Shown here piece after piece: positions 427 through 21,603 of a stretch of DNA of 64,000 nt (its first letter is position 1; every line of letters begins with the position of its first letter). The stretch is from positions 39,204-103,203 of the forward strand of contig JAAPAO010000049.1 of the NCBI GenBank assembly GCA_013115145.1, read 5' to 3'. The notes beneath the pieces are model-generated. The model did no database searches, had not been told where the DNA came from, and was given only the letters and a program-made list of their open reading frames with translations. Source of the stretch: Perkinsus chesapeaki ATCC PRA-425. Taxonomy: Eukaryota; Protista; Perkinsozoa. The translations under genes were made by a program, and so were the position numbers.

Positions 427-569
427 AACGATAAAACGCAATGACATTTCCTTCCTTTTTATCGGTATACGTGAGAGGTCTCATACCGCTCCTTCGTCTA
501 GTGTTCCACCGCCACCGCCGGCAGTCAACTCCACCATATCACCGTTGCCACAGTTGCCATTTTTAAGCC

Positions 570-2791: not shown

Positions 2792-2895
2792 CTCTTCAAT
2801 TTCAAGTTATTTAGCTACCATCGCACACGCTTATGTGCTGCCACAAACACTACCGTTTCGGAGTACCGCTGTTGTCGAGTTGTCCAAACAGTGAG

Positions 2896-5023
2896 ATGGC
2901 TAGTGGTGTCAGAATATCTCGTCCAATGGCTCTTGCCCGACTACTCCTTTACACTGTAGCATCAATAGTAGCAGGCCAGACCACCGCCCCAATAGAGCGG
3001 GTGCCCTTTATAATACACATATCAGATATCCATGTGTCACAGTAACCCCCTCGCCGCCCGACTATCCTCGGCATCCCCTCCCAGGTTTAATAACATAACT
3101 ATCGATAAGCTTTCTACATTCTGTCGGGATTTCCTTCCACGGGTGAAGGGCTACGGCTTGGTCGCCACTGGTGAGTTGCCTCTTGCCTTGCCTCTTGCCT
3201 TGCACCAGGACTGTTGCTTTCAGTTCTCGGCGGGGATCTTGTGGACTCTAACGTGGCAGCCTGGAGTGGCCAATATCCGGGGCCTATTGAGGAGGAGTGG
3301 GCCAAGCTCAGTCACGTGCTCATCAATGAGTGTGCGCCCCACAGCCCCATTCTCACTGTTCGGTGAGCTCCTGTGCTTTTGCTGGTTTGCCATCGCTCCT
3401 CCAGGGGGAACCACGACTCGTTCGCCGTTGCTGGTTATGATGATGAGAAGAATCATTTTTACAGAGAGATGGTGGAGCAGGTGGGCGCGTCGCTGGCAGG
3501 GGTCAGTTTCCAGGTTGCCTTATTTCAGTTGTGGCCGAAGTCTGCCGACTTCATCAGAGGGCCGGGGGGAAGCTGGATGCTCCCGATGTCGGACTACTTG
3601 CTCATCGGCCTCGATCTCACCCCATCTGCTGGCGCTAGCCGTCACTTCTTCGGTGTCTTCTCCAACGAGAATGAGGAATGGCTCAGAAGGGAATGGATCG
3701 AAAAAAGGCGGAACATTAGAACCATCATTGTTACTCACTACAATTTCGGTACACAGCTTCCAGGGCCTTGAGGGCTGCATCTGCCTCATTAGGAACACTT
3801 GAGCCGTCCGATCGCCGACGATTTGCCGATCTCTTGCATGAAGCCTCGGACGTTCATGTAGTTCTGTCGGGCCATACGCACACGGTGATGGGCCACTGGA
3901 TGTATGCCCAGTTCGAGCGACTTCTCGAGATGGAGGTGAAGTTGCTTTAGCTTCGGCCGCCGAAGTTCGGCGTTCTCTGTACAGCGCTCGTCAGGTACCC
4001 GACTTCAAGTTCGACGGCCTTGTTCGCCTTCTGCAACTACCGCCTGCCACATCGGAGAACAGCGACCCCCGAGAATGGCGGTATTCGATCCAGCCAGGTG
4101 AGGTCCCTCCCCCGACTATTCTGCCCCCCGTTCTCCACGCCGACGGTGAGATCTTCGTTACGGTGGTTGGGCCGAACAATATCGACAAGGTAGAGGCCAT
4201 CTGGGATGACCACGCTGTGCAGTTGGCGTTGGATGGCTCCGAGGATCATCTTTATAAAGGCCTGTTGGACCCTGCGTCTTCACTTGACTCTGGTATCGTA
4301 CGAGTCACTTACAACACCGGTGACTCTGTCGTAGAAACCAACATATCCCCTTTGAATCCACAGGCTCGGCTTATGGTATTCCCTCTGCAATGGGCGTTCA
4401 CTAACATGCATTACGCTATGTTTCTTGGCTCGGTTGCAGCATGGATTGGTAACATACTCCTTGCCTGGTCGCTCCAGGAGACCCTCGTTCGTTCTGGTAA
4501 ACTGCTACGGTATCTTCTACAAGGCATCGCCATCTTAATTCCCTTTTTGCCATGGAGCTTGGCTGTCGGATATCATAGTTGTCCGAGCATCGTGTTCTCC
4601 TTCGGAATATTCTGTTTGCGGACCCTCTCTTGGATGCCTAACGATACCTATGCAATTGCGTTCATTGGACTGAGTGTGAAGTTGGCCCTTTGCTTTGCGG
4701 TCGTGAAGTCGCTTGATGCTAAGAGTCGTTTGGCGCTTGTCACTATTCCTGTATTGCTATGGGGCCAATACTTCGCTCTGCGATGGACGGTGATGTCGTA
4801 TGGACCCTACGCCCTCATCATTGCGCCCGCGACCACACTGTGGGACGTAGTTTTCTGGTTTGGTATACTTAGAAAGTATATGGGATGGTGTAAACCCAAG
4901 AGGTCGGTCACCGTTCCGTATACTCAGTTGAGATTGGATCATGCTGATTCCACCAGCTCATCAGACAGTTCAGATGTGATAAATGGTACGTCAAGGCGAG
5001 CACGTCGTCGTGCTTCGCCGTAA
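2896..5023 (+). CDS. TMEM62-like metallophosphoesterase, paralog B (tandem duplicate, multi-exon)
   Basis: HISDIH, GDL, RGNHD, THY and SGHTH motifs with the same exon layout as paralog A. The TM-rich last exon (4163-5023) aligns with that of paralog A. Confidence 0.8.
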
Positions 5024-5182
5024 GGTCTTTGATGTTGCGTTCGAGATAAACGCAAAATGTATATAATGTTGAGATGAAATGAAATAATAGTCTGACCTAT
5101 GCCGATGAGCAACAGGGCTATCGATAAGGTAGATGACAAGCTAAAATCCTTATAATAATCCATCATGCACCAGGCGCACTCT

Positions 5183-6412
5183 TCACAGAACCATTATTGA
5201 TCGGTAGACCCCAAAACAGGATCCGATAGCAGAGATAACCAGTAGCGCGCCAAGCCCGCCAACGACAGCCATCCTTTCGGCTGAACCGTCCAAACGTTCT
5301 CCTCGTAAGTAAGATATTCTAAGCCAAAAAATGGTAGGATAGAAGTTGTGAATAAGTGAAAAGCATACTGAGCCTAGAAGGCCTACAAGACCTTGGAAGC
5401 TAGGAATCAGTATAGGGACAAGTATAGTAAAGCCCACCATAATAGTTCGAACCAGGATTGACCATAATATATTCTTATCTTCGATTCTTAAAGCTTTCTC
5501 GACTATCCTGAATGATGGGTTCATAAGGACAACGTAATGTGTAGCACAGACAACCAGTATAGAGAAAATGGCAATATAAGCAATGACACTCAACTTATGA
5601 CCAGTGGGAGACATTGCATCAATAACTGTATCAAAAGTCAGCAACTCATGGCCCCATCCTGCATAACCGGCTGCAGCTATGAAGAAATAAAGTACTATTA
5701 ATATTGACATTGAAATGTTAATAACGCGACTGCGTTGCTCTGGGTACTTCATGTCATGCAATATTGTCGTCGATGTACATGACACGGCGTAACCAAAAGT
5801 CATACTGGCAAATGTAATGCCAAGACCAACAAAGGAGGCTGGCGTGGGATCATAAGTGGCGGAGGAGTCTCGATTTATAGCCTTGAAGATTCCTCCAACC
5901 ACAATGGAGACAAGTAGAACAAACACGGCAGCAACTCCGACAGTTCCACTCACATACCCCACATGCTTCATTGTTCGTAGCCAGGAAAAAGGTAACATAA
6001 TTCCGCCCCAGATAAGTATCCAATACCTCTGATCTATCTGAGGAGCAAGCTTTACCGAGTTGGAGCCGAGTAAGAGCATCAATAGGCAGCTAGTTCCAAT
6101 CAAGGCTGCATTAAGGGCTACCGTAACGCTTATCATACCAATTCGGCCGAAAGCTGCGCGGCCTATATCCTCATAGTTGTGAGTTTCAGAAGTCATACAT
6201 AGTCTAAGAAGTTGGATGTAAAGAATACCAAGTGCACCGCAGAGGATGAGGAGGACAAAGCCAAAGACATAGCCAGCCTCTGCAACGGCCCGAGGGATAC
6301 TTAACATTCCAACACCGACACCGGTGAGGAGCATGTTGGTAACCGCCGACCTCGAAGTCTGCTTACCGGCCTCGATCTTGATGGATGATGTCGACTCTAG
6401 AGTCATTGCCAT
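5183..6412 (-). CDS. Amino-acid/auxin permease (Aa_trans/AAAP) family transporter, copy 1, intronless
   Basis: ~410 aa with about 11 TM helices. Motifs GVGMLSIPRA, YEDIGRAAFG, PFSWLRTMK, DMKYP, GSVCFS. Confidence 0.9.
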   Translation of the reverse strand: MAMTLESTSSIKIEAGKQTSRSAVTNMLLTGVGVGMLSIPRAVAEAGYVFGFVLLILCGALGILYIQLLRLCMTSETHNYEDIGRAAFGRIGMISVTVALNAALIGTSCLLMLLLGSNSVKLAPQIDQRYWILIWGGIMLPFSWLRTMKHVGYVSGTVGVAAVFVLLVSIVVGGIFKAINRDSSATYDPTPASFVGLGITFASMTFGYAVSCTSTTILHDMKYPEQRSRVINISMSILIVLYFFIAAAGYAGWGHELLTFDTVIDAMSPTGHKLSVIAYIAIFSILVVCATHYVVLMNPSFRIVEKALRIEDKNILWSILVRTIMVGFTILVPILIPSFQGLVGLLGSVCFSLIHNFYPTIFWLRISYLRGERLDGSAERMAVVGGLGALLVISAIGSCFGVYRSIMVL

Positions 6413-6648
6413 AAGATAACTCAATAATGAGGCTACTCAGGTCCTGAGGCATCCAGGTTCACGCACTGCTACCCTACGCCCCAGAGCTATACCGATATAC
6501 CCACGCGTGCGATAACTCAGAACTTTTTGATCAGAGGAAATCCATAGGTGATATGAGAAGTGTAGTCATTGGCATGCTCATCATCCATGGTGTTGCTGGC
6601 GCGATCATCACAATTTCCAACACCACCATAAGTACCAGGGCACAGGGA

Positions 6649-8472
6649 TTAAACCTGAGCCTGGAACTCCGAACTCTGCTCGATCTTGAACCAAACTAGC
6701 AATGCTTCGTACCATTCTTCATTCGTAAATGGAGGGTTCATGAAACTAGCAACCCACATTAAAGGATATGCTACTCTTTGTATTGTTGACTGTGATACTG
6801 CCCAGGCGACACTCTCACTTAGGGCATAACTAAACACAGGAGAGAACAGACAGACGCAGCAGCCACACTAACCTCGACACAAAGACCCCATCAACAACAA
6901 GCTCCCCTGTATCGGTGAGTGGGGCGAAAACTCCTTGCACGTCCCGAACTATGGCGATATCAACTAAGAGACTGCCACTCATCAATTTTTCAACATGCTC
7001 ACCGTTCTTACCTATCCGTGACAGAGAGGGCCGCGTTAATGCCCTAATCACCACGGAATCCCCAATAGCAAGATCTCCAGCTCGGCGGAAATCATCTTTG
7101 CCGAAATCAACGCGTACAAGGTGGTCAACCGAGGCACGCAGCGCTCGGCCGTCGGCCATGCGAAGGGAGAGCTGAAGTAACGCACTGCTTCAAGTCGTTC
7201 AAGAGGATACCGCAAGATAGAAGAGGTAGTAGCTTAGAGCTGACGACACAACTAACCGGAGACCTTTGTATCAGAAGTACCTACGTAATGCATCTTCCGA
7301 GAAGTATCTTTGTGGATCCAGCCAACCACTGTAGTCGGGACTCCTTCAATTCCCGACACAATCCTGTCCCCAATTGTGATCTCCGACATATACTTCATGG
7401 AGGAGGCTACAAGAAATAGTCAGCATTTAGATAACCAGCATTTCCTTCGATGCAGGCAGCTGATGCTACTCAACCTTGAGGCGACTTATCGAAGGGGCAA
7501 CCTGCCTTGGCCTCGTGATATCTCCACCAGTGCATTGCCAGGGAAGCATGCCGGTCGACACAGCGACGTATACTCTTCGACCTGATAGGAAGGCCGGAGA
7601 AACGAGTGGGCGACGAGCATACCATGAGTTTACCAAGAGTATTAAGAAGATGGGCACCTTGCTTCGAGCGCGCCTTAAACCTCCGTTCCCTGCAAAGCAC
7701 TAAGGCATTGATCTCGTCCCGGCATTCACGAGAACCTGCGAAGCGTACCGCTGTCCCCGATAAACGCGGAATTACAGAACTTCTTGTGATCTTTGGGCAA
7801 GTATGTGCTATGATGAAGCTCGCCACACTTATTGAGCTGAATAAGGCTGCACAAGCAATATGACAGAAATGGGTCGACGTTGCGGTATGCCGATGCCTGC
7901 AGATTGAGGTCTGCCTCACAATAGATGTCAACAGTATCTGAGCGAGAAGAGCGGAACTGAGCTTTCGCCGCATATCACTAGTGTGTACGATACCCAACTG
8001 AAACAGGTCTAACCAGTAAGTAGGAACCATTAGCACGTGTTATACTGGCGTCCCTCTTTACCTAGAGCCTCCCTACGAAGGGAACGAGTGTATCTCACGC
8101 TACTAAGTAGGCTCGGCTAGCTATCGAAGCCTTTACACTAAACACCTACCTTTATACTGCCCGATACTCGCGGTGCCCCATGAGGTACCTGGTATCTGAA
8201 ACAGATCACGTTCGGGATGCTCTAGGGACACACAGTCGGCCACAAAGCGAAAGCTCACTTGGGTCTTGGTTAGGCCATTACCAAGCGAATGCACCGTGCC
8301 TAAGAACCTTTTCAAGTCAGTTACCCACTTTCGACACCTTACTGGTTTCCGATAACAGGGGAATGCAACACCAGACCAGAGCCCATAAGAGCCCTCCAGG
8401 AAGACGAATCCGCTGCAGTCGGTAAATGGCAAGACCTGAAGGATCCCAGTATCCCGGAGACGCGCAGTCCAT
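6649..8472 (-). CDS. Secreted Hog-domain protein (Hedgehog-type Hint plus SRR-like tail) with a Cys-rich N-terminal domain, multi-exon
   Basis: Reverse-strand exons read: signal-like LLWALVWCCIPLLS; Cys-rich IYCEADL...YCLCSLIQLNKCG...KFCN; PA|CFPGNALVEI; MKYMSEITIGDRIV; VVGWIHKD; LRASVDHLV; GVFAPLTDTGELVVDGVFVSSYA; tail ...YPLMW...EWYEALL. Confidence 0.8.
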
Positions 8473-8646
8473 GGTAGAAAATGCAGCTGAACTCGCGGAA
8501 ATGATACTTCACAAGATTCCTAGGAAAACCGCATCCGAGAACAAGAACGAGAAGAAGACACTGTAGTGTAGATCCGGCGTCGGGACTTGTTCCAGAGAGA
8601 ACTCGAGGGGAGCATCCATATCACACGGCTGTTCTTAATGCACTCG

Positions 8647-9963
8647 TTAATGCAATGCAGATCTACGTATATCGACAGAACGCAACAGAGACCAAGGAAT
8701 AGACGAAGCGCAGATGGCTAACGTGATGACTGCATCATATATCCCACAGACAGAACCGACCAATGATATCAACAGCAAAAGGCAAAGAAGGACTATTTGA
8801 AGAATTGCCCGCTTAGATCCTGCTCTGAACTCACTCCAGAGAAAAAGGCTAATAAAAAATATAGGCGGATAGAAATTATGAATCAGAGAATAACAAACGG
8901 AGCCCAAAAGGCCGATAAGACCCTGGAAATTAGGTACAAATATTGCAACAATAACGGTAAAGGCGACTAAAGTGCTTCTTATAGCACAAGATTTGACAAA
9001 CTGGCCTTCCTTGACATTAAAGGCATGTTCAAGTATACGACTCGATGGATTCAGCATGACAGCATAATGAGTAATACATAACAACAGAATACTACATATA
9101 CTAATATAAGAGACTACATCATGACCAGAACCACTTCCAGTAACAGCATCAATAATATTCTGAAATTTAAGAAGAGAGTTTCCCCAACCAATATAACCAG
9201 ACAATGACACAAGGAAGTAGACAATAGCAATAATGCAAAGTCCCCAATAGACAACTCGTCGACGGGCTTGTGGATATTTCATATCATGTAACACGGTCGT
9301 ACTGGCACATGTTACGGCAAAAGCAAGCGTCATACTTGCGAAAGACATACCCAGCCCAATAGCTGTGACAGGGTACGGGTCATGAGATATATCGTCATGA
9401 ATCTCAGGATTCAACGCTCGAGCGAACCCCGCATAAATGAGCACCAACAAAAGACATATAACCGAAGACACTCCTACTGTACCACTTATATAACCGATAT
9501 GCTTCATATTAGGCAACCATGAGAGCGGTAAGAGGATGCAAGTCCATATGAGTATCCAGTAGGGCTGCGGGATTGCTGGATAAAGCTTATATGAGTTTTG
9601 GCCAAGGAGTAGCATAAGCAAACAACATGTACCAATTAAAGCACCATTGACTCCAAATGTAACAGCAAATAATCCCCATCGACCAAAGACATCCATACCG
9701 ATATCTTCATAACTACGCGTTTCTGGTTTCATACAGGCACGTAGAAGTTGAGTATAGAGGATTCCGACAACAGCACTAAATACCATAAGAATAAATCCAA
9801 ATGCATATCCAGCTTGAGCTATTGCCCTTGGTAGACTGAGCATTCCGACACCAATACCAGTGAGGGCAATGTTGGCCACGGCCGACATGTTCGACTGACC
9901 ATGCGATGGAGTGACACCTGACTTTATGCTGTCGATTGTATCAGATGCCTCTACGACTGGCAT
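8647..9963 (-). CDS. AAAP amino-acid transporter, copy 2, intronless
   Basis: ORF 8647-10020 (likely ATG at 9963) carries the same motifs as copy 1 and has a longer C-terminal tail than copy 3. Confidence 0.9.
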   Translation of the reverse strand: MPVVEASDTIDSIKSGVTPSHGQSNMSAVANIALTGIGVGMLSLPRAIAQAGYAFGFILMVFSAVVGILYTQLLRACMKPETRSYEDIGMDVFGRWGLFAVTFGVNGALIGTCCLLMLLLGQNSYKLYPAIPQPYWILIWTCILLPLSWLPNMKHIGYISGTVGVSSVICLLLVLIYAGFARALNPEIHDDISHDPYPVTAIGLGMSFASMTLAFAVTCASTTVLHDMKYPQARRRVVYWGLCIIAIVYFLVSLSGYIGWGNSLLKFQNIIDAVTGSGSGHDVVSYISICSILLLCITHYAVMLNPSSRILEHAFNVKEGQFVKSCAIRSTLVAFTVIVAIFVPNFQGLIGLLGSVCYSLIHNFYPPIFFISLFLWSEFRAGSKRAILQIVLLCLLLLISLVGSVCGIYDAVITLAICASSIPWSLLRSVDIRRSALH

Positions 9964-10183
9964 TGTGAATAAATCAAGATCGTATTCCCCTGAATCGCCA
10001 AACGCGCCATCTAGATGCACACTGTGAAGAACGCAAATACTTCCGGTGATATGTGTTATTAAATGACTGCAACGATAGCATGACGGCTTCTCTTTTCAAT
10101 GATGATATAAAGTATGGGAAGCGATCCAGAATAACTATGGCGGGAAGCCACCACTCAACTACAAGGATCATCTGCTGGCACAC

Positions 10184-11437
10184 TCAAGACACAAGCGTCA
10201 GAACAGAGTCGTAGATACCACAGATAGAGCCCGCAAGGGATATAAAGAGTAGAATAGTTAGTCCTACGAATTGCATAATATGGTATTTCGACCCGCTCCT
10301 CACTTTTTCCCAGATAAACAGACGAATGTAGAAGATCGACGGATAGAAGTTATGGATCAAGGAAAAACAAACAGAGCCTAGGAGACCTATAAGACCCTGG
10401 AAGTTGGGGACAAATATTGCAACAATAACGGTGAAGGCGACTAAAGTGCTTCTTATAGCACAAGATTTGACAAACTGGCCTTCCTTGACATTAAAGGCAT
10501 GTTCAAGTATACGGCTTGATGGATTCAGTAAAACCGCATAATGCGTTACAGACAATAACAGAATACTACATATACTAATATAAGAGACTACATCATGACC
10601 AGAACCACTTCCAGTAACAGCATCAATAATATTCTGAAATTTAAGAAGAGAGTTTCCCCAACCAATATAACCAGACAATGACACAAGAAAGTAGACAATA
10701 GCAATAATGCAAAGTCCCCAATACACAACTCGTCGACGGGCTTGTGGATATTTCATATCATGTAACACGGTCGTACTGGCACATGTTCCAGCAAAAGCAA
10801 GCGTCATACTTGCGAAAGACATACCCAGCCCAATAGCTGTGACAGGGTACGGGTCATAAGATATATCGTCATGGATCTCAGGATTTAGATCTCGAGCGAA
10901 CCCAGCATAAATGAGCACCAACAAAAGACATATAACCGAAGCCACTCCTACTGTACCACTTATATAACCGATATGCTTCATATTAGGCAACCATGAGACC
11001 GGTAAGAGGATGCAAGTCCATATGAGTATCCAGTAGGGCTGCGCGATTCCTGGATAAAGCTTATATGAGTTTTGGCCAAGGAGTAGCATGAGCAAACAAC
11101 ATGTACCAATTAAAGCACCATTGACTCCAAATGTAACAGCAAATAATCCCCATCGACCAAAGACATCCATACCGATATCTTCATAACTACGCGTTTCTGG
11201 TTTCATACAGGCACGTAGAAGTTGAGTATAGAGGATTCCGACAACAGCACTAAATACCATAAGAATAAATCCAAATGCATATCCAGCTTGAGCTATTGCC
11301 CTTGGTAGACTCAATATCCCGACACCGATTGTGGCGAGTACCATGTTAACCACCGCTGAGAAGTTAGACTGGCCATGACAGGGTGTGAGCTCAAGCTTAA
11401 TGCTCTCAAGTGTTTGACTTGACTCTGGGATTGTCAT
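10184..11437 (-). CDS. AAAP amino-acid transporter, copy 3, intronless
   Basis: ORF 10184-11548 (likely ATG at 11437). Near-identical to copy 2 over ~900 bp at offset 1474. Confidence 0.9.
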   Translation of the reverse strand: MTIPESSQTLESIKLELTPCHGQSNFSAVVNMVLATIGVGILSLPRAIAQAGYAFGFILMVFSAVVGILYTQLLRACMKPETRSYEDIGMDVFGRWGLFAVTFGVNGALIGTCCLLMLLLGQNSYKLYPGIAQPYWILIWTCILLPVSWLPNMKHIGYISGTVGVASVICLLLVLIYAGFARDLNPEIHDDISYDPYPVTAIGLGMSFASMTLAFAGTCASTTVLHDMKYPQARRRVVYWGLCIIAIVYFLVSLSGYIGWGNSLLKFQNIIDAVTGSGSGHDVVSYISICSILLLSVTHYAVLLNPSSRILEHAFNVKEGQFVKSCAIRSTLVAFTVIVAIFVPNFQGLIGLLGSVCFSLIHNFYPSIFYIRLFIWEKVRSGSKYHIMQFVGLTILLFISLAGSICGIYDSVLTLVS

Positions 11438-12564
11438 TGATTTCGAACTGAAATTAACCTGAAATATGCTATACTTAAAACAAAGCACGCTTATAGAGAT
11501 AAGACAAGCATCTCCTTTCCCTAGGTTCAATCCGATCTCATCACTCAAAAAGCAAAGATGGCAATAACGGGGCTAGAAAAGCAACGATAGTCTACACTTA
11601 GGTAATACCGCCCGATTCACCTAGAGCAATTCGAGAAGCGCAGCTTGGAGGCTCCGAATCAACTACCATATAGCCTGTGTAGGAGGGTGGAAAATCCCCA
11701 AGAAGAGCTCACTCTTCGCCAAGCAAGGGCTGCGAAGATCGCCCTAGTGTACGCGTGCTGTACCCCACATCCACGCGCACAACAATCTGTACAGTAATGG
11801 TTTGACTAAAAACATAGATAATTAATGATGTACGAGTGATCACTACCGACTACAACGAGATGTGTGCCTTAAAGTATTGCCCAGGATTACTCCTAGTAAC
11901 TGCTCATTCTATCGTAATGTTTGGGGTTTGGATGCGTCACGGACTAACGCATGCGTGCAAATACCGTTGTGACAGCAAAAGCGGTCTACTTCTTGGGTAC
12001 TAGTACTGATCTTATATCAGCGCGAAAATGCGTGTTCTTGGCTAATACAATCAGACGAGGAAGTAATATTCTTAGTCACAGAAGTGTTCCAAATACAATA
12101 TACCACCGAAACGGTAATCACGGCAATAGCTCAACTAAAGGGTATTCTCGAGGCCAATACTCTAGGCTGAGCCCTGGGATTTCTCCAACCCAACCACCTG
12201 TGGAAGACTAACTCAAGAGGACTTTAGTAAGGAACACAGTAGATGAAACAGTTAAGCAGTAACAACAGTAGTAGGATATTCTACAACTGATGAATCAGCA
12301 AATAGCCCCCCATGACCCTAGGCCAAAAGAGGGCATTGTTGTGCTGGCTTTCCATAGGAAAAGTGTTTACCATCATACAGCGACGGCAGCGCTCTTTGTA
12401 GCATCGGTACAGGTACATGACGGACGAGCAGAACTCCGAACGTCAAAGACCGGTGCTACTGGGGATAGACAAAACGAGACCGAACCAGAAACGAATCAGG
12501 ATCGACAATTTTGTGAATTGATTGAAAAGATGCTGTAAAATGTTAATGGTGGTTGTGGATTTAG

Positions 12565-13797
12565 TTACGCGCACAGCTCCTTTATAGCCGCATACACACC
12601 GAATCCAGAACCTATTACAGAGATGAACATCAGAAAACAAAGGAAAAGCGTAAATGCAATCCATTTAGGAGATCCAAAAATCTTCTCGCCTTTCAAATGA
12701 GAAAGGCGTAGATAGAAAACTGATGGATAAATATTGTGGATTAGCGAGAAACAAATAGACCCAAGTAGATTGATAAGAGCTGAGAAGCTTGGAACAAATA
12801 TCGCTACCAGAACGGTAACGGCGACTAGGCAACTTCTAAGCAAGACCGATCTCACAATCTGATTACTCTTGATACCAACCCATTCCTCAAATATTCTGCA
12901 CGCCGGATTCATCATAACAACATAATGTGTGGCACAGACTATAAGTATACCGACAATGCAAGTTGTAGCAACTGCAGAGTTATTACCAGGGACTGGTGCC
13001 ATAGCAGTAATGATAGTATCAAAATGCAATAGCTCTTGTCCCCAACCAATATACCCTGCTAATGATGCTAATAAGAATAGCATGATTAGACAGATAAAAG
13101 ATACCAAAAGGACCTTCGATTGTGCTTCAGGATGTTGCATATCCTTTAGAATAGTAGTGGTAGTACTCGTTACCGCATAAGAAAACGTCAACGTAGAAAA
13201 CGTTGTACCGAGCCCAACTATCGAAATTGGAGCTGCCCGGTACGGTACGGCTTCTGTAGTCTCGACTCGCTCCTGGACACCCGCAATTATAATCATGATC
13301 AAGACCACGACAACCGCCGCCACGCCCACAGTACCACTGAAATAACCAACTTGTTTCATAGTCCGCAGACAAGCTAATGGTAGCATTATAGCCGTCCATA
13401 TCAGTATCCAATACGTTTGGCTTATCTCTGGGGCTAGGAGAACAGAGTTCTGTCCCAATAGTAACATGAGTAGGCATCCAGTGCCCACAAGGGCAACATT
13501 TAATGCGATAGTAACCGCCATCATTCCCGGATATCCGAACGCATCCCGTCCAATATCCTCATAATTACGAGTACAGGGGTTCATACATTTCCGAAGCAAA
13601 TGGGCGTCCAGTAGACCCTCCGCCCCACATGCTACCAGAAGGATAAACCCTAGAACGTACCCGGCTTGAGCTATCGCTCCTGGGAGACCAAGCAGACCAA
13701 CACCGATACCGGTGAGAATTATATTCACTATGGCCGAAAAATTCGACTGACCGGTTTCTTCTACCGAAATCTTACTGGTTTCCGATGATATTGACAT
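12565..13797 (-). CDS. AAAP amino-acid transporter, copy 4, intronless
   Basis: ORF 12565-13890 (likely ATG at 13797). Motifs GVGLLGLPGA, YEDIGRDAFG, DMQHP, GSICFS. Confidence 0.9.
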   Translation of the reverse strand: MSISSETSKISVEETGQSNFSAIVNIILTGIGVGLLGLPGAIAQAGYVLGFILLVACGAEGLLDAHLLRKCMNPCTRNYEDIGRDAFGYPGMMAVTIALNVALVGTGCLLMLLLGQNSVLLAPEISQTYWILIWTAIMLPLACLRTMKQVGYFSGTVGVAAVVVVLIMIIIAGVQERVETTEAVPYRAAPISIVGLGTTFSTLTFSYAVTSTTTTILKDMQHPEAQSKVLLVSFICLIMLFLLASLAGYIGWGQELLHFDTIITAMAPVPGNNSAVATTCIVGILIVCATHYVVMMNPACRIFEEWVGIKSNQIVRSVLLRSCLVAVTVLVAIFVPSFSALINLLGSICFSLIHNIYPSVFYLRLSHLKGEKIFGSPKWIAFTLFLCFLMFISVIGSGFGVYAAIKELCA

Positions 13798-14241
13798 AAT
13801 AAAGGAAGTAACGTAACTGAATCTAGAAGAGGTGCAAATGTGTAAACGCCCAGCAAAAGTAATGCGGCAAATGCAATGGAACGCCATCACACAAACGACA
13901 ACGAATAAGCCCGCAGCCTAGTGTTCAAATGTGTACAAGGCTTTTAGCTAAGGAAAATCCATTGTATTCTCAGGACACAAATATATGAGCTGGCAAGGCA
14001 GCTCTCCGAAACCTGATGGTCTTCGAAGGATCTAGACAAACACCTGGTAATATTTAACGCGAACACGGGTTCCCACCAGCCCCAATGCTACTGGCACTGC
14101 AAACGGAACCGCATTGGAAGAGGAGCGTCACCGTGCAACTCACACGTCAATCTCGCGCGCCTCGAATATAGGATTTAACAGCGCTACTTCCATCTCGCTC
14201 GCCTGAAACTATCATATGTATTGTCACGGAAATCTTAAGGA

Positions 14242-14491
14242 TGATGGGATTCGCCATAACTGGTAACTCAATGCCGCTAGGCGCAAGTAAAACTAGCTAC
14301 AAATGATCTTATACTCAACTATCTTCAGATCTATATCATCTAGATACCCATTATCGAAGGCCACGGTTACAATATTGGGCGAGCGAGATCTAATAATAGT
14401 CCCAGGAAACCAATGCCGACGGTTGACACCGTTTAGCATAATATAAGCGACCGATATCCGCTGGCCAATCATGAGACTGGGAGTCTCATCG
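14242..14491 (-). repeat. 3' LTR (inner boundary 14488 or 14491); overlaps the last ~66 codons of the integrase ORF
   Basis: Matches 20947-21195 except at 3 transitions (gctag/gttag, ctagc/ctaac, ctggg/ctagg). Confidence 0.92.
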
Positions 14492-16209
14492 CGCCCCCCT
14501 TGTGGGCCTCCACAAGCATCAGACGGGATCTTCCATTGCACCGCATCCAAGCGTATCATAACAGGGGTATTGTCATTACCATCCAAGAACCATACCCATA
14601 GTTTATTGGAATAATCGCAAGGATCGTATGTCACTCTAGCGGATCGCCAAGCGGAAGTGGAGTCCATTTTAACATCAATATACATACCTTCTCGAGAAAC
14701 AACAGCAGAACCATCGCACGGATAAGGGTACAACATAACAATATTGTAAAGGTTCTCGGTAGTGACCAAGCCATTTGCCAACCTTACTTTGACACGCCGT
14801 CCCGAGATGCACTCGATGATATGGCCCATCCGAAAACTCATACCGAGCTTACGGCCTCCCATATAGACCAAAACACAATCTCCAGGACGAAAGGTGCCTC
14901 GGACTTTACCGTCGCAAGCAGTAGATCGGCATTTCTGAGCAACAGCGGTGAGGGAACGGTCTTTGAGATCACGCCACAGCCACTGCATAAAACAGTTCCT
15001 AACCGCGCGAACGCGATTGGGACACAACGACTCGTGACCATTAGCAGATTCTTGGACCGCCTCGACACAGCCCCGCGACCGAGTACGGCCACAGTGCAAA
15101 CTATCTGGAGTGATGATATCGGCGCCTTCCTCAGAAACATAGAAGCTGCCCAGAGGGCGAGTGTTCAGCAGTAACATTACCTCCTCCAGTAGCTCATCCT
15201 GCGCGTCCGCATTCTCCGGCCAACGCCCCGCAGTATGGCGCAACATCACTCGCAAACGGTCACTAGCAATGCCGTGAAGCTTCTCGGATCCGAGCTCCCA
15301 AGGCGCCCGGCTGGAAATCAGCTCGACCCGAGCATTGATCTCAGAGCTGACTTTAGAGACAAAATTCTCCTCAGTCCGGAAATAACTAGCACGATCACAC
15401 ACCACGATAGCAACGGAACCAGTGCGTAACTTGAGCAATCGAAGAACACGGAGAGCTTCACGAGCGGTCTCGCTAGAGACTCTAAAAAGGCTTATGTGCT
15501 TACTATACAAACAGCAAGCCGACATAACTTTCCATTTATCCCCCACCGAGTAGAAGTCTATAGCAACCTTATAGTAAGTAGGCATCCTCGCCAGGAATGT
15601 TTCATCGGAGTGACCAACAGAAGGAAGCTGTGTCCAATCCCGTCTCGCACGCAGGATCTTACAAACGTGGCACTGAGCCACTAGGTCCTTCATTTGCCGG
15701 CCACAACCATCCATATGAAACATAGTACACCGCGACAAAGAATCTCGCACCCCAGCATGTCGACAAGCTCGATGGCCATCAAGAAGAATCTTTCGCCTCA
15801 CAGAATCTGCTGCCCTAGGTATAACATAACGGAGGACTTGAGTACCATAGGGACTACCCGAGCGAAAGACAACTAAACCATCAGCATCGCACAATAAGGG
15901 GCCACACGCGGGACCTTTGCCAGCTCGAATCTCCTGACATCGCACATCATCAGCTTGAGCATTTGCCACTACAACTTTACGATCGTCATCACTAAACATA
16001 TGGGGGTATTCCAGACCATTGGCCTCTCCGCCCCCCTTGACATTCCACTTTAATAGGTGAATGACAAAACGTAAGGCTTTAAACGAATGACAAATAGCAT
16101 CAAAGCTGAACGACTGCTTAGCCACACGATTAGACAGACTTGTCGTCTCATCAGACCGATCAGTCTCAGCAAACCGAATGTAGTCCTCGACCAGTTGGTC
16201 AACCAAGGG
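14293..16209 (-). CDS. Integrase (HHCC, DDE core, SH3-like C-terminal domain) followed by two Tudor-like domains
   Basis: GHRACRHAG...QCHVC; VAIDFY; VVCDRASYF; APWELGSEKL; LLNTRPL; FRPGDCVLV. Then two repeats of the pattern G.xI.V...W..xxV/I....xxV.FxxG...I.L...W/YKI. Confidence 0.88.
   Translation of the reverse strand, partial: PLVDQLVEDYIRFAETDRSDETTSLSNRVAKQSFSFDAICHSFKALRFVIHLLKWNVKGGGEANGLEYPHMFSDDDRKVVVANAQADDVRCQEIRAGKGPACGPLLCDADGLVVFRSGSPYGTQVLRYVIPRAADSVRRKILLDGHRACRHAGVRDSLSRCTMFHMDGCGRQMKDLVAQCHVCKILRARRDWTQLPSVGHSDETFLARMPTYYKVAIDFYSVGDKWKVMSACCLYSKHISLFRVSSETAREALRVLRLLKLRTGSVAIVVCDRASYFRTEENFVSKVSSEINARVELISSRAPWELGSEKLHGIASDRLRVMLRHTAGRWPENADAQDELLEEVMLLLNTRPLGSFYVSEEGADIITPDSLHCGRTRSRGCVEAVQESANGHESLCPNRVRAVRNCFMQWLWRDLKDRSLTAVAQKCRSTACDGKVRGTFRPGDCVLVYMGGRKLGMSFRMGHIIECISGRRVKVRLANGLVTTENLYNIVMLYPYPCDGSAVVSREGMYIDVKMDSTSAWRSARVTYDPCDYSNKLWVWFLDGNDNTPVMIRLDAVQWKIPSDACGGPQGGRDETPSLMIGQRISVAYIMLNGVNRRHWFPGTIIRSRSPNIVTVAFDNGYLDDIDLKIVEYKIICS
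14489..14502 (-). other. Polypurine tract next to the 3' LTR, lying inside the integrase ORF
   Basis: The minus strand reads AAGGGGGGCGCGA directly before the LTR repeat and encodes QGGRD. Confidence 0.7.
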
Positions 16210-18974
16210 CTACATTCGGTTTCATGACCAACTTGGTCATGAACCTCATCGTTCACAGAAACTAGATATGAGACTTTATCAACAAGTGGCTGCTCATAAT
16301 GGGGTTGCCACTCAGAGTCTAGAGGATCTTCTGTGTGGTCGAAGATTGCCCAGGCATTGCTGCCTCGCATAGGATCACGAGCAACCTCTTCGTCAAGACC
16401 ACCTTCGTCACACAAACACTGATGTAACGATAATCCAGACGCAACCAATCGCGCCTCAAAGACTCTTGAAAGTAAGTCTGCCTCGTCGTTGCGGGAACCC
16501 TCGATGTGATGAACAGAGACATCTGAGAGCTCACGCATTCGTGATAACTCAGCCAGTAATCCACTCACTAACCTGGATAATACTCGGCGCTCGACCCCCC
16601 GAGACTCTTTGAGGAGATCAGCGCTATCGCAGGAAGTGGCCCACCGGACACATGACAGATTATCACAATAGATCTCAACCTTGATGCGACCCTCAACACT
16701 TGTGGTAGATGAGACTCCAGTAACACTTTGCCTGTACTCGAGGAAGTCGACAATCATCTGAGTCATCCTTAAAAGGACAACCAACTCGCGACGATTCGAG
16801 TGCCAGTTTACCTCGCTCTTCTTAAATCGGTAGACTTCACTGAAGAGACGAGTGGCGTCAGCAAAGGCTACAATACCACCACCAGATGAAGACGCATCGC
16901 AGTAGCAACGGAGAACGATCGGGCTGGCTTCGATTGGCCTAACCTCGGAAGTGTGCCGGCAGGTTTCCCTAACCAGCTCTTCCATCCAATCTAGCATACA
17001 CCGGAAAGCCGCATAAGCATTGTCGGTCAGACGAGAAAGATCAATCTGGGTGTCCCAAGGCTCTCTGTGAAAACATCGAGCAATAAGCGACCGGATAGCA
17101 TCGCCACAACCCCTAGCATATGGGTGTTGCTTCCCAGGGTCGTAGCTTAGACACCCACCGGCCTTGAAAACATCAATCTTGCTGACCTGAGCTGTCGTGC
17201 GACAACGCTCAATGAACGAAACCACCACAGCCAATCGTTTCTCTCGTTGACATGTCAATACTATTAAACTGCTCTCGTAACGGACTCGCATGCCGAGGAA
17301 GGAACCCTCGCTAGCAACAGCGATCTCGACACCGCATTCAGAGAGCAACGAAAGTAGTTGATGCTGTTTGTCTTCTGTAACCATTATGAACACTTTCCGC
17401 ATCTGTACATCAAACCCCGCCCGAAGGAGGAGACATAACAGCAACTTGAACATAAAGACGACCACGCGGATGGTTCCGGAGATGGCCATATCATCCACAA
17501 ACAACATCAACATCAACGTCCAGAGCTGTTGCAAAAGCAAAGCACACAGCTGCTGGATTCGGTGAAAATCTATAGACCGGGCAGAGCATACCAACCGACC
17601 AAGAGAGCCAGAGAGCCCACAGGGCCCAAAGACCACTCCGAAACATAAACGGCATGAGGCAAACAATTCACCGGTCCCTGACCGAAGGTGTAAAACGTTG
17701 TTCACACATCGGCATTTGTAAAAGGCTGCCCGAGCATCCAGAAGGAAGGTACACTCTCTGGACTCTGCTCGCAGTAATGCGATAGGGTGAAATAACAATG
17801 GCACATCACTGCTAGCGGGCGGTAACGCCTTATTTACACAACGGAAATCCACGACCAAACGGCTTTTGCGAGAGGTAGTTGGTGGTATGAGAAAAACCTG
17901 AGCGGCTGCTGCCGACTCGCCGACCCCCTTCACGGAGCACTCAGTACTCGAGGTCGGGATCCACCAACGAGAAAGGACATACTCTTGAACTAGCCGGCGA
18001 TACTCGCTTTTTAAAGGATCACTCAAGCGAGAATATAACGACGCCGCATAGGAACGACCTTTCTCCTGTACCGTCTTGGGTGTTGGAACCCAGATCTCAC
18101 AAACATGAGTCTGCTCCACGACATCCGTCGTTTCACAAGGAGCGAGCTCACGAACCCTGCTCTTGTAAGCACCGTTGGTCTTAGGGATAACCTTCCACCC
18201 TTCATGGACAACTTGGCTCAGGATTTCATCGACAATACCTGACTCGTGCGGTTGAAGATCGGCACGAAGAACTCGGTCAGGCTTGCTCGGAACGGTCGAT
18301 GATGAATCCACACAACCATGAGTGGTAGAAATAAAACCTTCATCCTTGTAGTCACCGATGTTATTTAGGACATCTATATCTAGCTCTACGACTTGTGCTA
18401 CTGAGCCTAGACCACCGAATTCTTCGGGAGAGTCACTCTGACGGTAAACACACTCCCCACCGACATGCATATAGGTCGCTCCTCGAGACTCTAACCCCCA
18501 CTCTTCGATAAGCTGTCGGCCAGCAAGGACCAATAACTCATCGTTAGGAACAACACCAGGAGATGGGAGTATACGGAGCTCACAGTCGACGAATTCGGAT
18601 ACCAAGGTTCTAGACTCAAAGCCGTAGACAGCTATTTTACAATCAATCTGATGCTGGATGGCCACTCTCTGACCGTTCGCCATGGCAACGAGGGTGCTAC
18701 CCCCGGTACCATTAACCGAACAGCCAATAGCATCAAGAGCCACTATGGCTTTATCTACACTTGATACTAATAAATAAGGCCGGCCAGCACCGGAATCTAC
18801 TACGCATCGTGCCTCCAAGAATGGAGAATCAGATGCAAAACGTGCAGGACTAATTCGCACCCTCAAAGACATCTCGGGTGGTACAGGAGTTAAAAGGGAA
18901 ATAACATCAAAAATAGAAGAAGTCGGATGTCCGAGAGCTAATGTATCACTAGGCACATCGCCCTCATCATTCAT
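16050..18974 (-). CDS. Pol: aspartic protease, reverse transcriptase and RNase H (in the -1 frame relative to gag)
   Basis: VVDSGAGRPY; RLVVDFRCVN, LDARAAFY, LCFGVVFGP, FVDD; RCYCDASS, HSNRREL, YCDNLSCVRW, HHIEGSRNDEADLLSR. Confidence 0.92.
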   Translation of the reverse strand: MNDEGDVPSDTLALGHPTSSIFDVISLLTPVPPEMSLRVRISPARFASDSPFLEARCVVDSGAGRPYLLVSSVDKAIVALDAIGCSVNGTGGSTLVAMANGQRVAIQHQIDCKIAVYGFESRTLVSEFVDCELRILPSPGVVPNDELLVLAGRQLIEEWGLESRGATYMHVGGECVYRQSDSPEEFGGLGSVAQVVELDIDVLNNIGDYKDEGFISTTHGCVDSSSTVPSKPDRVLRADLQPHESGIVDEILSQVVHEGWKVIPKTNGAYKSRVRELAPCETTDVVEQTHVCEIWVPTPKTVQEKGRSYAASLYSRLSDPLKSEYRRLVQEYVLSRWWIPTSSTECSVKGVGESAAAAQVFLIPPTTSRKSRLVVDFRCVNKALPPASSDVPLLFHPIALLRAESRECTFLLDARAAFYKCRCVNNVLHLRSGTGELFASCRLCFGVVFGPCGLSGSLGRLVCSARSIDFHRIQQLCALLLQQLWTLMLMLFVDDMAISGTIRVVVFMFKLLLCLLLRAGFDVQMRKVFIMVTEDKQHQLLSLLSECGVEIAVASEGSFLGMRVRYESSLIVLTCQREKRLAVVVSFIERCRTTAQVSKIDVFKAGGCLSYDPGKQHPYARGCGDAIRSLIARCFHREPWDTQIDLSRLTDNAYAAFRCMLDWMEELVRETCRHTSEVRPIEASPIVLRCYCDASSSGGGIVAFADATRLFSEVYRFKKSEVNWHSNRRELVVLLRMTQMIVDFLEYRQSVTGVSSTTSVEGRIKVEIYCDNLSCVRWATSCDSADLLKESRGVERRVLSRLVSGLLAELSRMRELSDVSVHHIEGSRNDEADLLSRVFEARLVASGLSLHQCLCDEGGLDEEVARDPMRGSNAWAIFDHTEDPLDSEWQPHYEQPLVDKVSYLVSVNDEVHDQVGHETECSPWLTNWSRTTFGLLRLIGLMRRQVCLIVWLSSRSALMLFVIRLKPYVLSFTY

Positions 18975-18979
18975 CCCTT

Positions 18980-20962
18980 CTAGTTTCCCGAACCAGACTT
19001 CTCGCCGCTCTTAACCATTGGGTCGCTCTTGTGGTTACCACTTTCGTCATCTTTCTTGACAAGGTCTTCTATTTCCCATACTCGGAATTTTCCAGATGGG
19101 AGAGAGGATACACTAGATAACCCGCCCTCTCGGTTGTGATAACCAACGATATAATAAGTACGACCGTAACGGTTATGACGAGAAAGAACGCCATCTGGTT
19201 TACACATAGATATCATCTCCTGCTTATTCCTGCAACCATAACCAGTCACGCCAAACGCCGCTGCGTACCGACCACAAAACTCTCTGAAGGCTGACCTCGA
19301 TTTTCCACCTTGGTCGCTAGATTGGTTTTGCTTATCGGTGCCGGGGACACCATGAATGGCCCCGACAGAGTCATTGATTGGCGGTGACCTTTGAGGAATA
19401 ATGCTGTTTGTCTCTTCCATAAGTCTGGCCTCGCTGCGGATGTACTCCACGATAGTGTCCTGAACAAATGGACCAGTGCAATGAAGAGGGACAGCACTTT
19501 CCCAATCGCTGTCTGATGATGCTTTTTGTTTACAGCGACGGATCACACCCTGGACCATATCTCTCGGCAACTTGGATAGAATTTGCCTCACGAACTGGAT
19601 CAACTGGGCATCGGTGGATCCTGCGCTATAAACCACGCGATAAATCTCGCAAGCCGCAACCACTTCCTTCAAATATGAATCGATGTCCCTGGCGGACTTG
19701 AACTTGAGTCCAGAGACAATGGAAGTGAGTTTCTCCACGAGAACACTCCTGCGAGCATGAACAGCCATACATGCCTGCTTTATAGCAGTCCAATCATTCC
19801 CATTGGTATTGTAAGTCCTCTTGGCAGTATCAAGAACATCAGGACACTTCTCTAAAGTGTTGAGGAATTTTTGGACACAGGCATGCTTTAGACCAAAATG
19901 GGGTTGAAAGTTACCGTTCTCGTCATAAAAACCACCACCAGCCTCATATAAAACTTCTTCAATCCTCAGCGCATGCTGGGCAAACTCATGGCTCTTGCCC
20001 AACGATTGAGTAGCAATTTTTCCAACATCTGCAGATTCGCACTTCTTGGGAAGATTCTGAACATTCACTCTTGGAGCTTCGACATTGGACGCTGAGTCGC
20101 CCGGGTACACATCACGCTGATGATCAGGGGAAGCTGATAACATAAGAGCCCTTGAAGCTTGGCTAGACTGGTGATAACTCATTGCCGATGCCCCAACTGC
20201 TATTACCGGAGATCCGCTAGGATCTATTGGTAAAGCTACTGGTTGCAAGGAACCCGGTAGAGGGACACCTTGCTGAATAGGAGCTTGATGAGGAACAGCT
20301 GGTCTATGAAACACTTGTTGGGGAACACTTTGTTGAAGAGCAGCTTGTTGATAAACAGCTTGTTGATGAAAGACTTGTTGTGCCGGAAGACTGTAACGAT
20401 CCTGTTGTGACACTGCTGAACGTGCTTGAAGTTCTCCACTTCGTCTCGATAAGGTAGAATGAACACTATCAATACGACCTTGATTGAGCACTTGTTGAGT
20501 AGCACTGCTCGGGGCAGGTGGTGTAACGTATTGACGAATTATACCAGAGTTCGAAGAGGAAACTCTAGAGGCATTTGACCGTCCCAATGCTTGGGAATTT
20601 AACTCGGTCAACTGATCATGCCTCAACTCCAAGGCTATCACGTATGCGCCAGCTTCTTCTAGAACAGCTCGGAGATCAGCTTCTTGCTCTGCGAGAGTAT
20701 CACAAACCCTCTCATCATCTTCACTCACAATAATAATGTTATTAAGTCTCTCAACAACATCACGCAACTTCGATCGAATCTTGCCTCTGTGAATCCTTGC
20801 CTTCTTAAGTTCTTCTCGCAAAGATTCTGGGGAGTCGAATAAGGCGGCTGACTCGATGAACGACGGCCTTCGAATAAGAACAGACGGGCGTTCTTGTACG
20901 CCAGCCGCAGACCCTTCTATCGGGTTCGGATGTGTAGGTGTCGCCATGATGGGATTCGCCAT
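18980..20962 (-). CDS. Gag (coiled-coil N-terminus, Q-rich repeats, capsid-like core, RRM-like C-terminus, no CCHC knuckle)
   Basis: 660-aa ORF directly after the 5' LTR. Capsid-like segment ...FVRQILSKLP. No CX2CX4HX4C motif seen. Confidence 0.8.
   Translation of the reverse strand: MANPIMATPTHPNPIEGSAAGVQERPSVLIRRPSFIESAALFDSPESLREELKKARIHRGKIRSKLRDVVERLNNIIIVSEDDERVCDTLAEQEADLRAVLEEAGAYVIALELRHDQLTELNSQALGRSNASRVSSSNSGIIRQYVTPPAPSSATQQVLNQGRIDSVHSTLSRRSGELQARSAVSQQDRYSLPAQQVFHQQAVYQQAALQQSVPQQVFHRPAVPHQAPIQQGVPLPGSLQPVALPIDPSGSPVIAVGASAMSYHQSSQASRALMLSASPDHQRDVYPGDSASNVEAPRVNVQNLPKKCESADVGKIATQSLGKSHEFAQHALRIEEVLYEAGGGFYDENGNFQPHFGLKHACVQKFLNTLEKCPDVLDTAKRTYNTNGNDWTAIKQACMAVHARRSVLVEKLTSIVSGLKFKSARDIDSYLKEVVAACEIYRVVYSAGSTDAQLIQFVRQILSKLPRDMVQGVIRRCKQKASSDSDWESAVPLHCTGPFVQDTIVEYIRSEARLMEETNSIIPQRSPPINDSVGAIHGVPGTDKQNQSSDQGGKSRSAFREFCGRYAAAFGVTGYGCRNKQEMISMCKPDGVLSRHNRYGRTYYIVGYHNREGGLSSVSSLPSGKFRVWEIEDLVKKDDESGNHKSDPMVKSGEKSGSGN
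18983..18989 (-). other. -1 programmed ribosomal frameshift slippery heptamer G_GGA_AAC at the gag/pol junction
   Basis: The minus strand reads TCG GGA AAC TAG. An X XXY YYZ heptamer sits in the gag frame immediately before the gag stop, and the -1 frame is open into pol (GKLEGMNDEG). Confidence 0.85.
20270..20385 (-). repeat. Imperfect 15-nt tandem repeat encoding QQxxx pentapeptides in Gag
   Basis: Plus-strand units such as acagcttgttgataa / acagcttgttgatga / gcagcttgttgataa encode QQVFH-QQAVY-QQAAL-QQSVP-QQVFH. Confidence 0.75.
20936..20946 (-). other. Primer-binding site TGGCGACACCT
   Basis: Begins with TGG directly after the 5' LTR end. Complementary to a tRNA 3' end ...GGTGTCG-CCA (G discriminator, typical of tRNA-Ser). 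Confidence 0.75.
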
Positions 20963-21196
20963 AACTGGTAACTCAATGCCGTTAGGCGCAAGTAAAACTA
21001 ACTACAAATGATCTTATACTCAACTATCTTCAGATCTATATCATCTAGATACCCATTATCGAAGGCCACGGTTACAATATTGGGCGAGCGAGATCTAATA
21101 ATAGTCCCAGGAAACCAATGCCGACGGTTGACACCGTTTAGCATAATATAAGCGACCGATATCCGCTGGCCAATCATGAGACTAGGAGTCTCATCA
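20947..21196 (-). repeat. 5' LTR (outer boundary 21193 or 21196)
   Basis: The minus strand runs TGATGAGAC...CCCATCA, with terminal inverted repeat TGATG/CATCA. Contains the first gag ATG (20962). Confidence 0.92.
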
Positions 21197-21530
21197 GGAC
21201 AAGCGACTCCGAGATTCCAAGAGGCCGAGTATCCTTTGTCGTTTCCTTATTAGTGAAACGGTCAGCACGGATTTCTGAATTAAGACAACTTAAATGATTA
21301 GTAGTAAATTACACGTGATGATATAGCGCATGTTTATACCGACATTGCTAGCTCTCAGCTTGCTTCTCCCCGACGGCGGTTGCGTAGACACAAATCCATC
21401 AACTTGAAGGCATCAAGCTCTAATATGTGACAACAAATACCAACAAACTAGGACGGTTTCTTTATTTACCGCTGAGAGTCGCCACGAATAAGAAATCGCC
21501 ACAGCCAGCGATCTGACCGTCAAAACCAGA

Positions 21531-21603
21531 GCGGCTTTGGCGCAGTAGGTAGCGCGTAGGTCTCATAATCCTAAGGTCGCGAGTTCGATCCTCGCAGGCC
21601 GCA
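21531..21603 (+). tRNA. tRNA-Met (CAT), elongator type
   Basis: Full cloverleaf: acceptor GCGGCTT/AGGCCGC, D arm GCGC/GCGC, anticodon arm TAGGT-CTCATAA-TCCTA, T arm GCGAG-TTCGATC-CTCGC, followed by TTTT. Lacks the initiator A1:U72 pair and GGG/CCC anticodon stem. Confidence 0.95.

Follow-up and report, generated by a model that had tools for sequence, protein, structure and literature searches.

How much of the long terminal repeat (LTR) of a retroelement can be protein, and what would a protein domain be doing there? The question is raised by a 250-nt segment of Perkinsus chesapeaki ATCC PRA-425 DNA, positions 14242 to 14491 of a 64,000-nt stretch (GenBank assembly GCA_013115145.1, contig JAAPAO010000049.1, positions 39,204 to 103,203 of the forward strand), which as a whole is called the window here. 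A first-pass annotation, made from the letters of the window, had read the segment as an LTR into which the integrase gene runs. Our answer, to which we give a probability of about 0.72, is that we have here the 3′ LTR of an LTR retrotransposon recently inserted in P. chesapeaki, that it encodes the second barrel of a tandem Tudor/Agenet-type reader, kept by selection, and that this reader would be a targeting module. The parts of the element are as follows.

14242..21196, minus strand: whole LTR retrotransposon, 6,955 bp, recognized by its LTR pair, primer-binding site (PBS), polypurine tract (PPT), target duplication and the order gag, protease, reverse transcriptase (RT), RNase H, integrase
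14242..14491, minus strand: 3′ LTR, 250 nt, with TGATG...CATCA ends; 196 coding nt, the stop and a 51-nt non-coding tail
20947..21196, minus strand: 5′ LTR, 250 nt, with TGATG...CATCA ends
14239..14241, minus strand: target-site duplication, 3 bp, 3′ side, read from the sequence
21197..21199, minus strand: target-site duplication, 3 bp, 5′ side
14492..14505, minus strand: PPT region, 14 nt, containing a run of six G, abutting the 3′ LTR and within the integrase frame
20937..20946, minus strand: PBS, 10 nt, starting with TGG, abutting the 5′ LTR and also coding the Gag N-terminus
14293..18974, minus strand: pol, for protease, RT, RNase H and integrase with its C-terminal barrels
18980..20962, minus strand: gag-like open reading frame (ORF), 660 codons from the first ATG, which is inside the LTR
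14716..14886, minus strand: integrase SH3-like C-terminal domain, placed by alignment A10 and strand pattern, present in all five related elements
14512..14700, minus strand: predicted Tudor-like barrel 1, on the upstream side of the PPT, found in every family, the most distant (locus L006, below) included
14296..14491, minus strand: predicted Tudor-like barrel 2, wholly LTR-encoded, integrase residues ~573-637, from profile, fold and selection evidence
20998..21177, minus strand: 59-codon ORF with ATG in the 5′ LTR, which repeats barrel 2 and is judged to be a by-product of LTR duplication

The element has what identifies an LTR retrotransposon, namely direct LTRs with TG...CA ends and a short target duplication, a PBS at the 5′ LTR and a PPT at the 3′ LTR. 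Its two LTRs differ at only four of 250 sites, the first base included (98.4% identity), which makes the insertion a young one. At LTR base 1, the 3′ LTR has a C, and the 5′ LTR and the relatives have a T.

Open for 637 codons, the integrase frame reaches its stop, at 14293-14295, 196 nt inside the 3′ LTR. That is, 196 of the 250 LTR nucleotides (78%) are coding. Translated in this frame, the PPT reads QGGR, the LTR opens on the wobble base of the Arg codon, and its bases 2-4 make up the Asp codon that follows. Both the PPT and the LTR terminus, or att end, are thus inside the integrase frame, and the first-pass reading of an integrase that passes through the PPT and about 200 nt into a protein-coding 3′ LTR was correct. 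The pol/integrase frame in this lineage does not end before the PPT. When the sequence was shuffled, the 65 LTR codons of the window stayed open in only 1.9% of the shuffles, and those of three related LTRs in 1-4%. An open frame of this length is accordingly beyond what chance would give.

Is the arrangement peculiar to one insertion? Word-index protein searches found Perkinsus relatives only, and the element's proteins are absent, as exact sequences, from the protein collection searched. Five related loci, making six copies with the window, were compared, as follows.

L001: P. chesapeaki, from the same genome as the window but of a second, divergent family; integrase identity to the window 46%
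L002 and L003: P. marinus ATCC 50983; integrase identity to the window 70-78%
L005: P. olseni, sister of L001; integrase identity to the window 45%
L006: P. olseni, a third family; integrase identity to the window 29%

The integrase frame passes the PPT and continues 181-229 nt into the LTR, covering 54-78% of it, in the window, L001 (229 of 424 nt), L002 and L003 (181 of 243 nt each) and L005. The residues QGGRD across the PPT/LTR junction are invariant in alignment A5, as expected since the priming tract and the integrase recognition end share their bases with these codons. The 14-nt PPT run has the same letters in a P. marinus relative, and the PBS 10-mer is unchanged in four of the five related loci, L005 being one base off. 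The frame of L006 also passes the PPT and the TGATG terminus and then stops 22 nt into a 195-nt LTR; only part of the lineage, then, has the long extension.

The LTR borders used in these counts are secure because a paralogous empty site of L002 shows the exact LTR ends and the 3-bp duplication; L001 is also flanked by a 3-bp duplication. The empty target site is kept in a segmental duplication of P. marinus (L002:4172-4857 together with 9657-10144, against 14353-15494). The duplicated copies are 96-98% identical, and since the site is preserved empty in the paralogue, the L002 insertion is younger than the duplication.

The pattern of substitutions shows that purifying selection preserves the protein of the LTR-coded part, across two element families and three Perkinsus species. 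Between the window and L003, the proportions of non-synonymous and synonymous differences (pN and pS) are 0.23 and 0.85 in the LTR-coded part, pS being saturated, with differences of 0.29/0.19/0.66 at the three codon positions; the corresponding values for the integrase core are 0.12 and 0.74. The independent pair of L001 and L005 gives pN 0.21 and pS 0.73 over 76 LTR-coded codons with no indel. The pN/pS of the LTR-coded part is thus ~0.27-0.29 in both pairs. In contrast, the non-coding LTR tail of L001 and L005 has a p-distance of 0.45 and five indel runs, of 1, 1, 2, 22, and 2 nt, none of them a multiple of three. Coding-part indels between the window and the P. marinus LTRs are of 9, 9, and net 3 nt, all in frame. 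Neutral evolution with frame-breaking indels, which the first-pass annotation had set beforehand as the finding that would speak against a coding LTR, is not what the copies display.

The same nucleotides were also proposed to act as promoter and terminator. Between the window and L003, synonymous sites of the LTR-coded part are saturated (pS 0.85), and accordingly no promoter-type nucleotide constraint can be seen there beyond the PPT and the LTR terminus. Promoter and terminator roles inside the coding part are putative. One candidate promoter element, a perfectly conserved 20-nt run at 14369-14388 that contains CCAAT, was set aside, as it is only the second-longest such run, and a 23-nt run occurs elsewhere in the integrase alignment.

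Beyond the SH3-like C-terminal domain, the integrase has two more β-rich units, the second of which is LTR-coded. Because family scans left the identity of the domain open, an exhaustive phmmer search of 1.84 billion representatives was made; it returned 18 matches, down to E 7e-17. Besides Perkinsus elements, these are mostly long repeat proteins of other protists and of metagenomes, and the repeats align mainly to the LTR-coded barrel. Pfam scores the repeats strongly as Tudor_5, Agenet, 53BP1-Tudor, and SGF29-Tudor.

Structure prediction points the same way. AlphaFold2 (AF2) run with alignment A5 gave two five-stranded barrels, with a mean predicted local distance difference test score (pLDDT) of 67, and of 65-88 in barrel 2; from the single sequence of the last 195 residues the model was unusable (pLDDT 39). 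Foldseek with the alignment-based model returned BAHCC1, ADCP1, SETDB1, UHRF1, FMRP, SHH1, Spindlin, and SGF29 as top matches (E 3e-4 to 7e-3), that is, almost exclusively tandem Tudor, tandem Agenet, and SAWADEE histone readers. Alignment A10 has conserved aromatic positions and an Asp, which may mark the site of an aromatic cage. No curated family model reaches the Tudor/Agenet assignment, and barrel fold and homology to Tudor repeats do so with moderate confidence; at that level, the tandem Tudor-like identity of the two barrels is supported. The first-pass description of the LTR part as a Tudor-like domain is thus borne out by sequence and fold, and the pN/pS values above add purifying selection. 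Two further candidates were dropped. Barrel 2 has no detectable similarity to barrel 1, of which it might have been a duplicate, and a match of the integrase tail to TATA-binding protein (E 0.04) was judged to be chance.

The position of the coding stretch relative to the RNA start is suggested by the sister family. A copy of the Perkinsus spliced leader, 20-21 nt long (PmaSL1, searched as printed in PMC3101222), is present in the LTR tails of both L001 and L005, at these places.

L001:457-476 and L001:6805-6824: spliced-leader-like copies
L005:1030-1049 and L005:7305-7324: spliced-leader-like copies

In both elements, the copy is found between the integrase stop and the gag ATG, ~30 nt before the latter. 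The left LTR of L005 is reduced to its last 53 nt, and this remnant begins at the spliced-leader-like sequence. On the simplest reading of these sequences, the RNA of the sister family would start at the mark; the whole coding stretch would then be U3 and so absent from the RNA 5′ end. No spliced-leader-like mark is found in the window, and the RNA start of the window family is accordingly an extrapolation. The mark offers a way of placing the U3/R border from sequence. The leader copy may be left over from a genomic RNA that was trans-spliced, or it may mimic a trans-spliced 5′ end; if R of the sister family does start with the host leader, the genomic RNA would be trans-spliced or would imitate a trans-spliced mRNA. 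Such LTR copies could also explain some of the intron-less 'SL-like' genomic copies mentioned in PMC3101222. The truncated left LTR of L003, considered as another RNA-start mark, turned out to be an assembly gap of Ns.

We propose the following mechanism. The pol/integrase frame reads through the PPT and the LTR terminus, so that about three quarters of the LTR codes the second of two barrels. Together, the barrels would form a tandem Tudor/Agenet-type reader of methylated histone tails. By analogy with the chromodomains of chromoviruses, the reader would tether the integration complex to particular chromatin, and the targeting module would thus be carried inside the LTR, as in the plant CRM centromeric retrotransposons.

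Three other explanations have to be weighed against this one. The LTR copy of the Tudor domain might be an independent micro-gene, with the 5′ LTR ORF translated alone and solo LTRs seeding micro-exons that host genes could capture, as the first-pass annotation envisaged. The ORF is present as described, intact from ATG to stop, and its protein is identical to the integrase tail; the 5′ LTR of L001 also has an ATG ORF, of 60 codons. The two LTR differences named in the annotation are synonymous, as is a third, at LTR base 1, the fourth being non-coding. Yet an intact coding copy in the 5′ LTR of a young insertion is automatic, because both LTRs are made from one template. The synonymous differences number only three, and their force is gone once the other LTR pairs are added: counts of synonymous and non-synonymous coding differences within an insertion are 3/0 for the window, 1/1 for L001, and 0/2 for L002, pooled 4/3. 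Met is altogether lacking from the LTR-coded segment of P. marinus, its alignment column is not the same in the window family as in the L001/L005 family, and the conserved start codon that an independent LTR gene would have is thus missing. In the sister family, the spliced-leader-like mark and the 5′ copy that begins there would put the RNA 5′ end downstream of the ORF. Neither the window nor ~75 kb of related loci holds a solo LTR, and the window has no further copies; the matches of the exhaustive protein search include no small stand-alone protein and no Perkinsus host gene. We judge the 59-codon ORF to be an automatic copy rather than a separate gene. The LTR-borne micro-gene gains no support and is very improbable, and scattered micro-exons and captured host modules gain none from these searches either. 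The least probable explanation, which the selection pattern already refutes, is that the tail is meaningless read-through, an accidental open frame left by the loss of a stop. L006, which ends 22 nt into its LTR without the domain, does show that the lineage as a whole can do without the extension. Shuffled LTRs, however, stay open in only 1-4% of trials, and all four of the diverged LTRs keep the frame open; the low pN/pS and in-frame indels beside a decaying non-coding tail, and the Tudor-like sequence and fold signal, are equally at odds with an accident.

The third explanation is unlikely, though much less so than the other two. It grants that the barrels are real and selected and makes them something other than histone readers: an extension of the DNA-binding SH3-like domain, or a binder of RNA or of a host protein, e.g., a methyl-arginine ligand or a tethering factor. 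At the confidence reached here, SH3-like, Tudor, KOW, and chromo folds are not easily told apart; KOW domains and a ribosomal protein are among the fold matches, bacterial repeat proteins (P0005, P0017) are among the sequence matches, and the insertion contexts are heterogeneous. The best fold matches, however, are consistently tandem Tudor/Agenet readers of methyl-lysine, the repeats in the sequence matches are strongly scored as Tudor_5/Agenet/53BP1-Tudor by Pfam, and the conserved aromatic residues and Asp fall at the putative cage site.

Several points weigh against the tandem reader as targeting module. All Pfam matches to barrel 2 are under the gathering scores (Agenet E 0.007-0.03, Tudor_3 E 0.015, BAHCC1-like Tudor E 0.067), and a profile of the family against the PDB ranks the KDM4C and KDM4B Tudor domains first with weak values (E 0.2-0.7). 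The AF2 model is of moderate confidence and was built on about four distinct sequences; the Foldseek TM-scores are ~0.3, since the model leaves the barrels' orientation to one another uncertain. The histone-reader and targeting roles are drawn by analogy with chromodomain integrases and the CRM clade. The coding stretch is probably within U3 in the window family, with U3/R/U5 borders extrapolated from the sister family. The six copies lie in mixed contexts and are too few for any call on target preference. Finally, the integrase of the window is out of frame with RT/RNase H, and the protein of this particular copy may not be made.

The contexts are these. The window copy lies between a transporter gene and a tRNA gene in a gene-dense region, L001 is inserted in a 31-bp tandem repeat (L001:1-82 and 6855-6927), and L006 is inserted in a long satellite with units of ~9 bp (about 1965-3806 and 10572-12000+). 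The flanking genes in the window are as follows.

21531-21603, plus strand: tRNA-Met (CAT) gene, found by ARAGORN and Rfam, 335 bp beyond the 5′ LTR
5183-13890, minus strand: at least four Aa_trans amino-acid transporter genes in a tandem array, immediately downstream of the element

Targeting to tRNA genes was considered and rejected. No tRNA gene was found in L001-L003, the related loci covered by the scan, and the proximity of tRNA-Met is probably coincidental. The 3′ end of the tRNA-Met gene does not match the PBS. Three of the transporter genes were scanned with Pfam (E 1e-48 to 1e-53), and the fourth is placed by an 88% repeat, adjacent copies being 88% identical over 300 nt. The other neighbours in the window are ordinary, as follows: a cation ATPase, an MFS/UNC-93 protein, and an exostosin-like protein.

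The gag of the window copy is intact; its pol has no internal stops and one frame change, between RT/RNase H and integrase. From the sequence, this change may be a lesion or an assembly error; it is not a conserved feature, since L006 and P0025 carry RT to integrase in one frame. The relatives are damaged in other ways. In L001, pol contains an in-frame stop besides a single frame change; in L002, gag carries one stop and one frame change, and pol one frame change and one large internal deletion; L003 has one large internal deletion besides its assembly gap; and the integrase frame of L005 is interrupted once.

Coding and cis-acting sequences also overlap at the other end of the element. The conserved gag ATG, at 20945-20947, straddles the LTR/PBS junction, using the last LTR base and the first two PBS bases, and the PBS codes the Gag N-terminus M-A-T-P in all families (window 20937-20947; L001:506-516; L002:5100-5110). 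The window copy has one more in-frame gag ATG, at 20962, which is inside the LTR and 15 nt farther upstream. The gag stop is followed by 5 nt of spacer and a pol ATG in another frame, alike in the window (18972-18982), L003 (L003:7620-7630), and L002 (L002:6965-6975); the gag stop and pol start of L001 overlap by one base (L001:2036-2040). Judged from these junctions, gag and pol look like separate cistrons with a conserved stop-restart or bicistronic layout rather than a frameshift site. A palindrome with an 8-bp stem lies just past the first bases of the LTR (14471-14489 and 21176-21194); it falls within 9 nt that are inserted, in frame, by comparison with the P. marinus LTR, and it looks like an inverted LTR terminus.

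What kind of element is it? Pfam matches of the integrase to rve and H2C2 recur in five proteins, below the cut-offs (E ~1e-3 to 5e-2). The protease-RT-RNase H part (16053-18974, minus strand) has no Pfam match at E<0.1, although motifs of the DSG, xVDD, and DAS types can be seen in it by eye. Phmmer of pol and integrase against the PDB gave nothing useful, and profiles of the pol and integrase alignments yielded marginal PDB matches only, those of RT/RNase H being to pol proteins (E 0.2-0.85). For this reason, the element is left unplaced as to Ty3/gypsy or another group. It may be described as belonging to a Perkinsus-specific lineage of LTR retrotransposons in which the gene order is gypsy-like. 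It is not filed in the CRM clade or the chromoviruses, as it has no chromo match, its module is Tudor/Agenet-like, and the only relatives found are from Perkinsus. The lineage is very divergent, and transposon annotation that relies on domains is likely to miss it. Nearby in P. marinus (L003, gene 323-7622) there are canonical gypsy-like elements whose Pfam matches are normal, and NCBI gene models render the present lineage as spliced hypothetical proteins (P0001).

It is tempting to go further, although we do so only tentatively and with a good deal of doubt. The element could represent a deep-branching, undescribed lineage of Perkinsus LTR retroelements, with an RT invisible to Pfam and with nearly all cis-signals coding, the PPT and LTR terminus as QGGRD and the LTR/PBS junction as the gag ATG. 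Its U3-coded Tudor barrel might have been gained independently of the stramenopile case discussed below and might steer integration by histone marks, and R of the sister family would start with a spliced leader. Perkinsus, a parasite of shellfish, has little transposon annotation, and the element defines there a family that current domain models miss. It is also a clean natural case of nucleotides under multiple constraints, serving as priming tract, integrase recognition end, and protein.

How does the arrangement compare with known systems? Some retroviruses have accessory ORFs that overlap U3, as separate genes with their own expression routes. Those ORFs and the Perkinsus frame share coding with the 3′ LTR; in Perkinsus, however, the overlapping part is the C-terminus of pol itself. 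The Nef/U3-like overlap suggested in the first-pass annotation is thus a loose analogy, with coding bases shared with the LTR but no accessory gene involved; the plant CRM elements are the closer analogue (PMC3059260, PMC3605345).

Chromodomain integrases, e.g., that of MAGGY, resemble the Perkinsus protein in having a reader of the 'Royal' superfamily fused to the integrase C-terminus, which is thought to tether integration to methylated histones; the chromodomain/H3K9me targeting of MAGGY is cited in 10.1101/2021.11.30.470311. The domain family differs, and most chromoviral clades have the domain upstream of the PPT. Gypsy-10_Ec32 of Ectocarpus has a C-terminal Tudor domain and was called in 2025 the first transposable element with one (PMC12477816). 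It and a Tribonema homologue share with the Perkinsus elements a retrotransposon pol that ends in a Tudor domain. The likeness is one of description and may reflect either homology or independent acquisition; the hosts are stramenopiles, and the text on Gypsy-10_Ec32 is silent on an LTR-encoded or tandem domain.

The closest likeness is to plant CRM chromoviruses of group A, e.g., the Beetle elements of Beta. Their gag-pol ORF runs on into the 3′ LTR, a CR motif lying downstream of the PPT, and their LTRs end in TGATG...CATCA (PMC3059260, PMC3605345). The window element has the same arrangement, that is, a pol ORF that continues past the PPT into the 3′ LTR, a conserved C-terminal and putative targeting module encoded there, and the same LTR ends. 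The differences are as clear. The Perkinsus module is Tudor/Agenet-like and the second of a tandem pair, whereas that of CRM is the chromodomain-derived CR motif; gag and pol form two cistrons in place of the single gag-pol polyprotein of CRM; and the host is an alveolate parasite rather than a plant, with an RT undetected by Pfam and a target duplication of 3 bp. An LTR-encoded targeting module is thus known from plant CRM elements, and the Tudor-like version in Perkinsus is new. With it, an alveolate example with a different reader domain would join the rare LTR-encoded targeting modules of integrases, and the solution would have arisen more than once.

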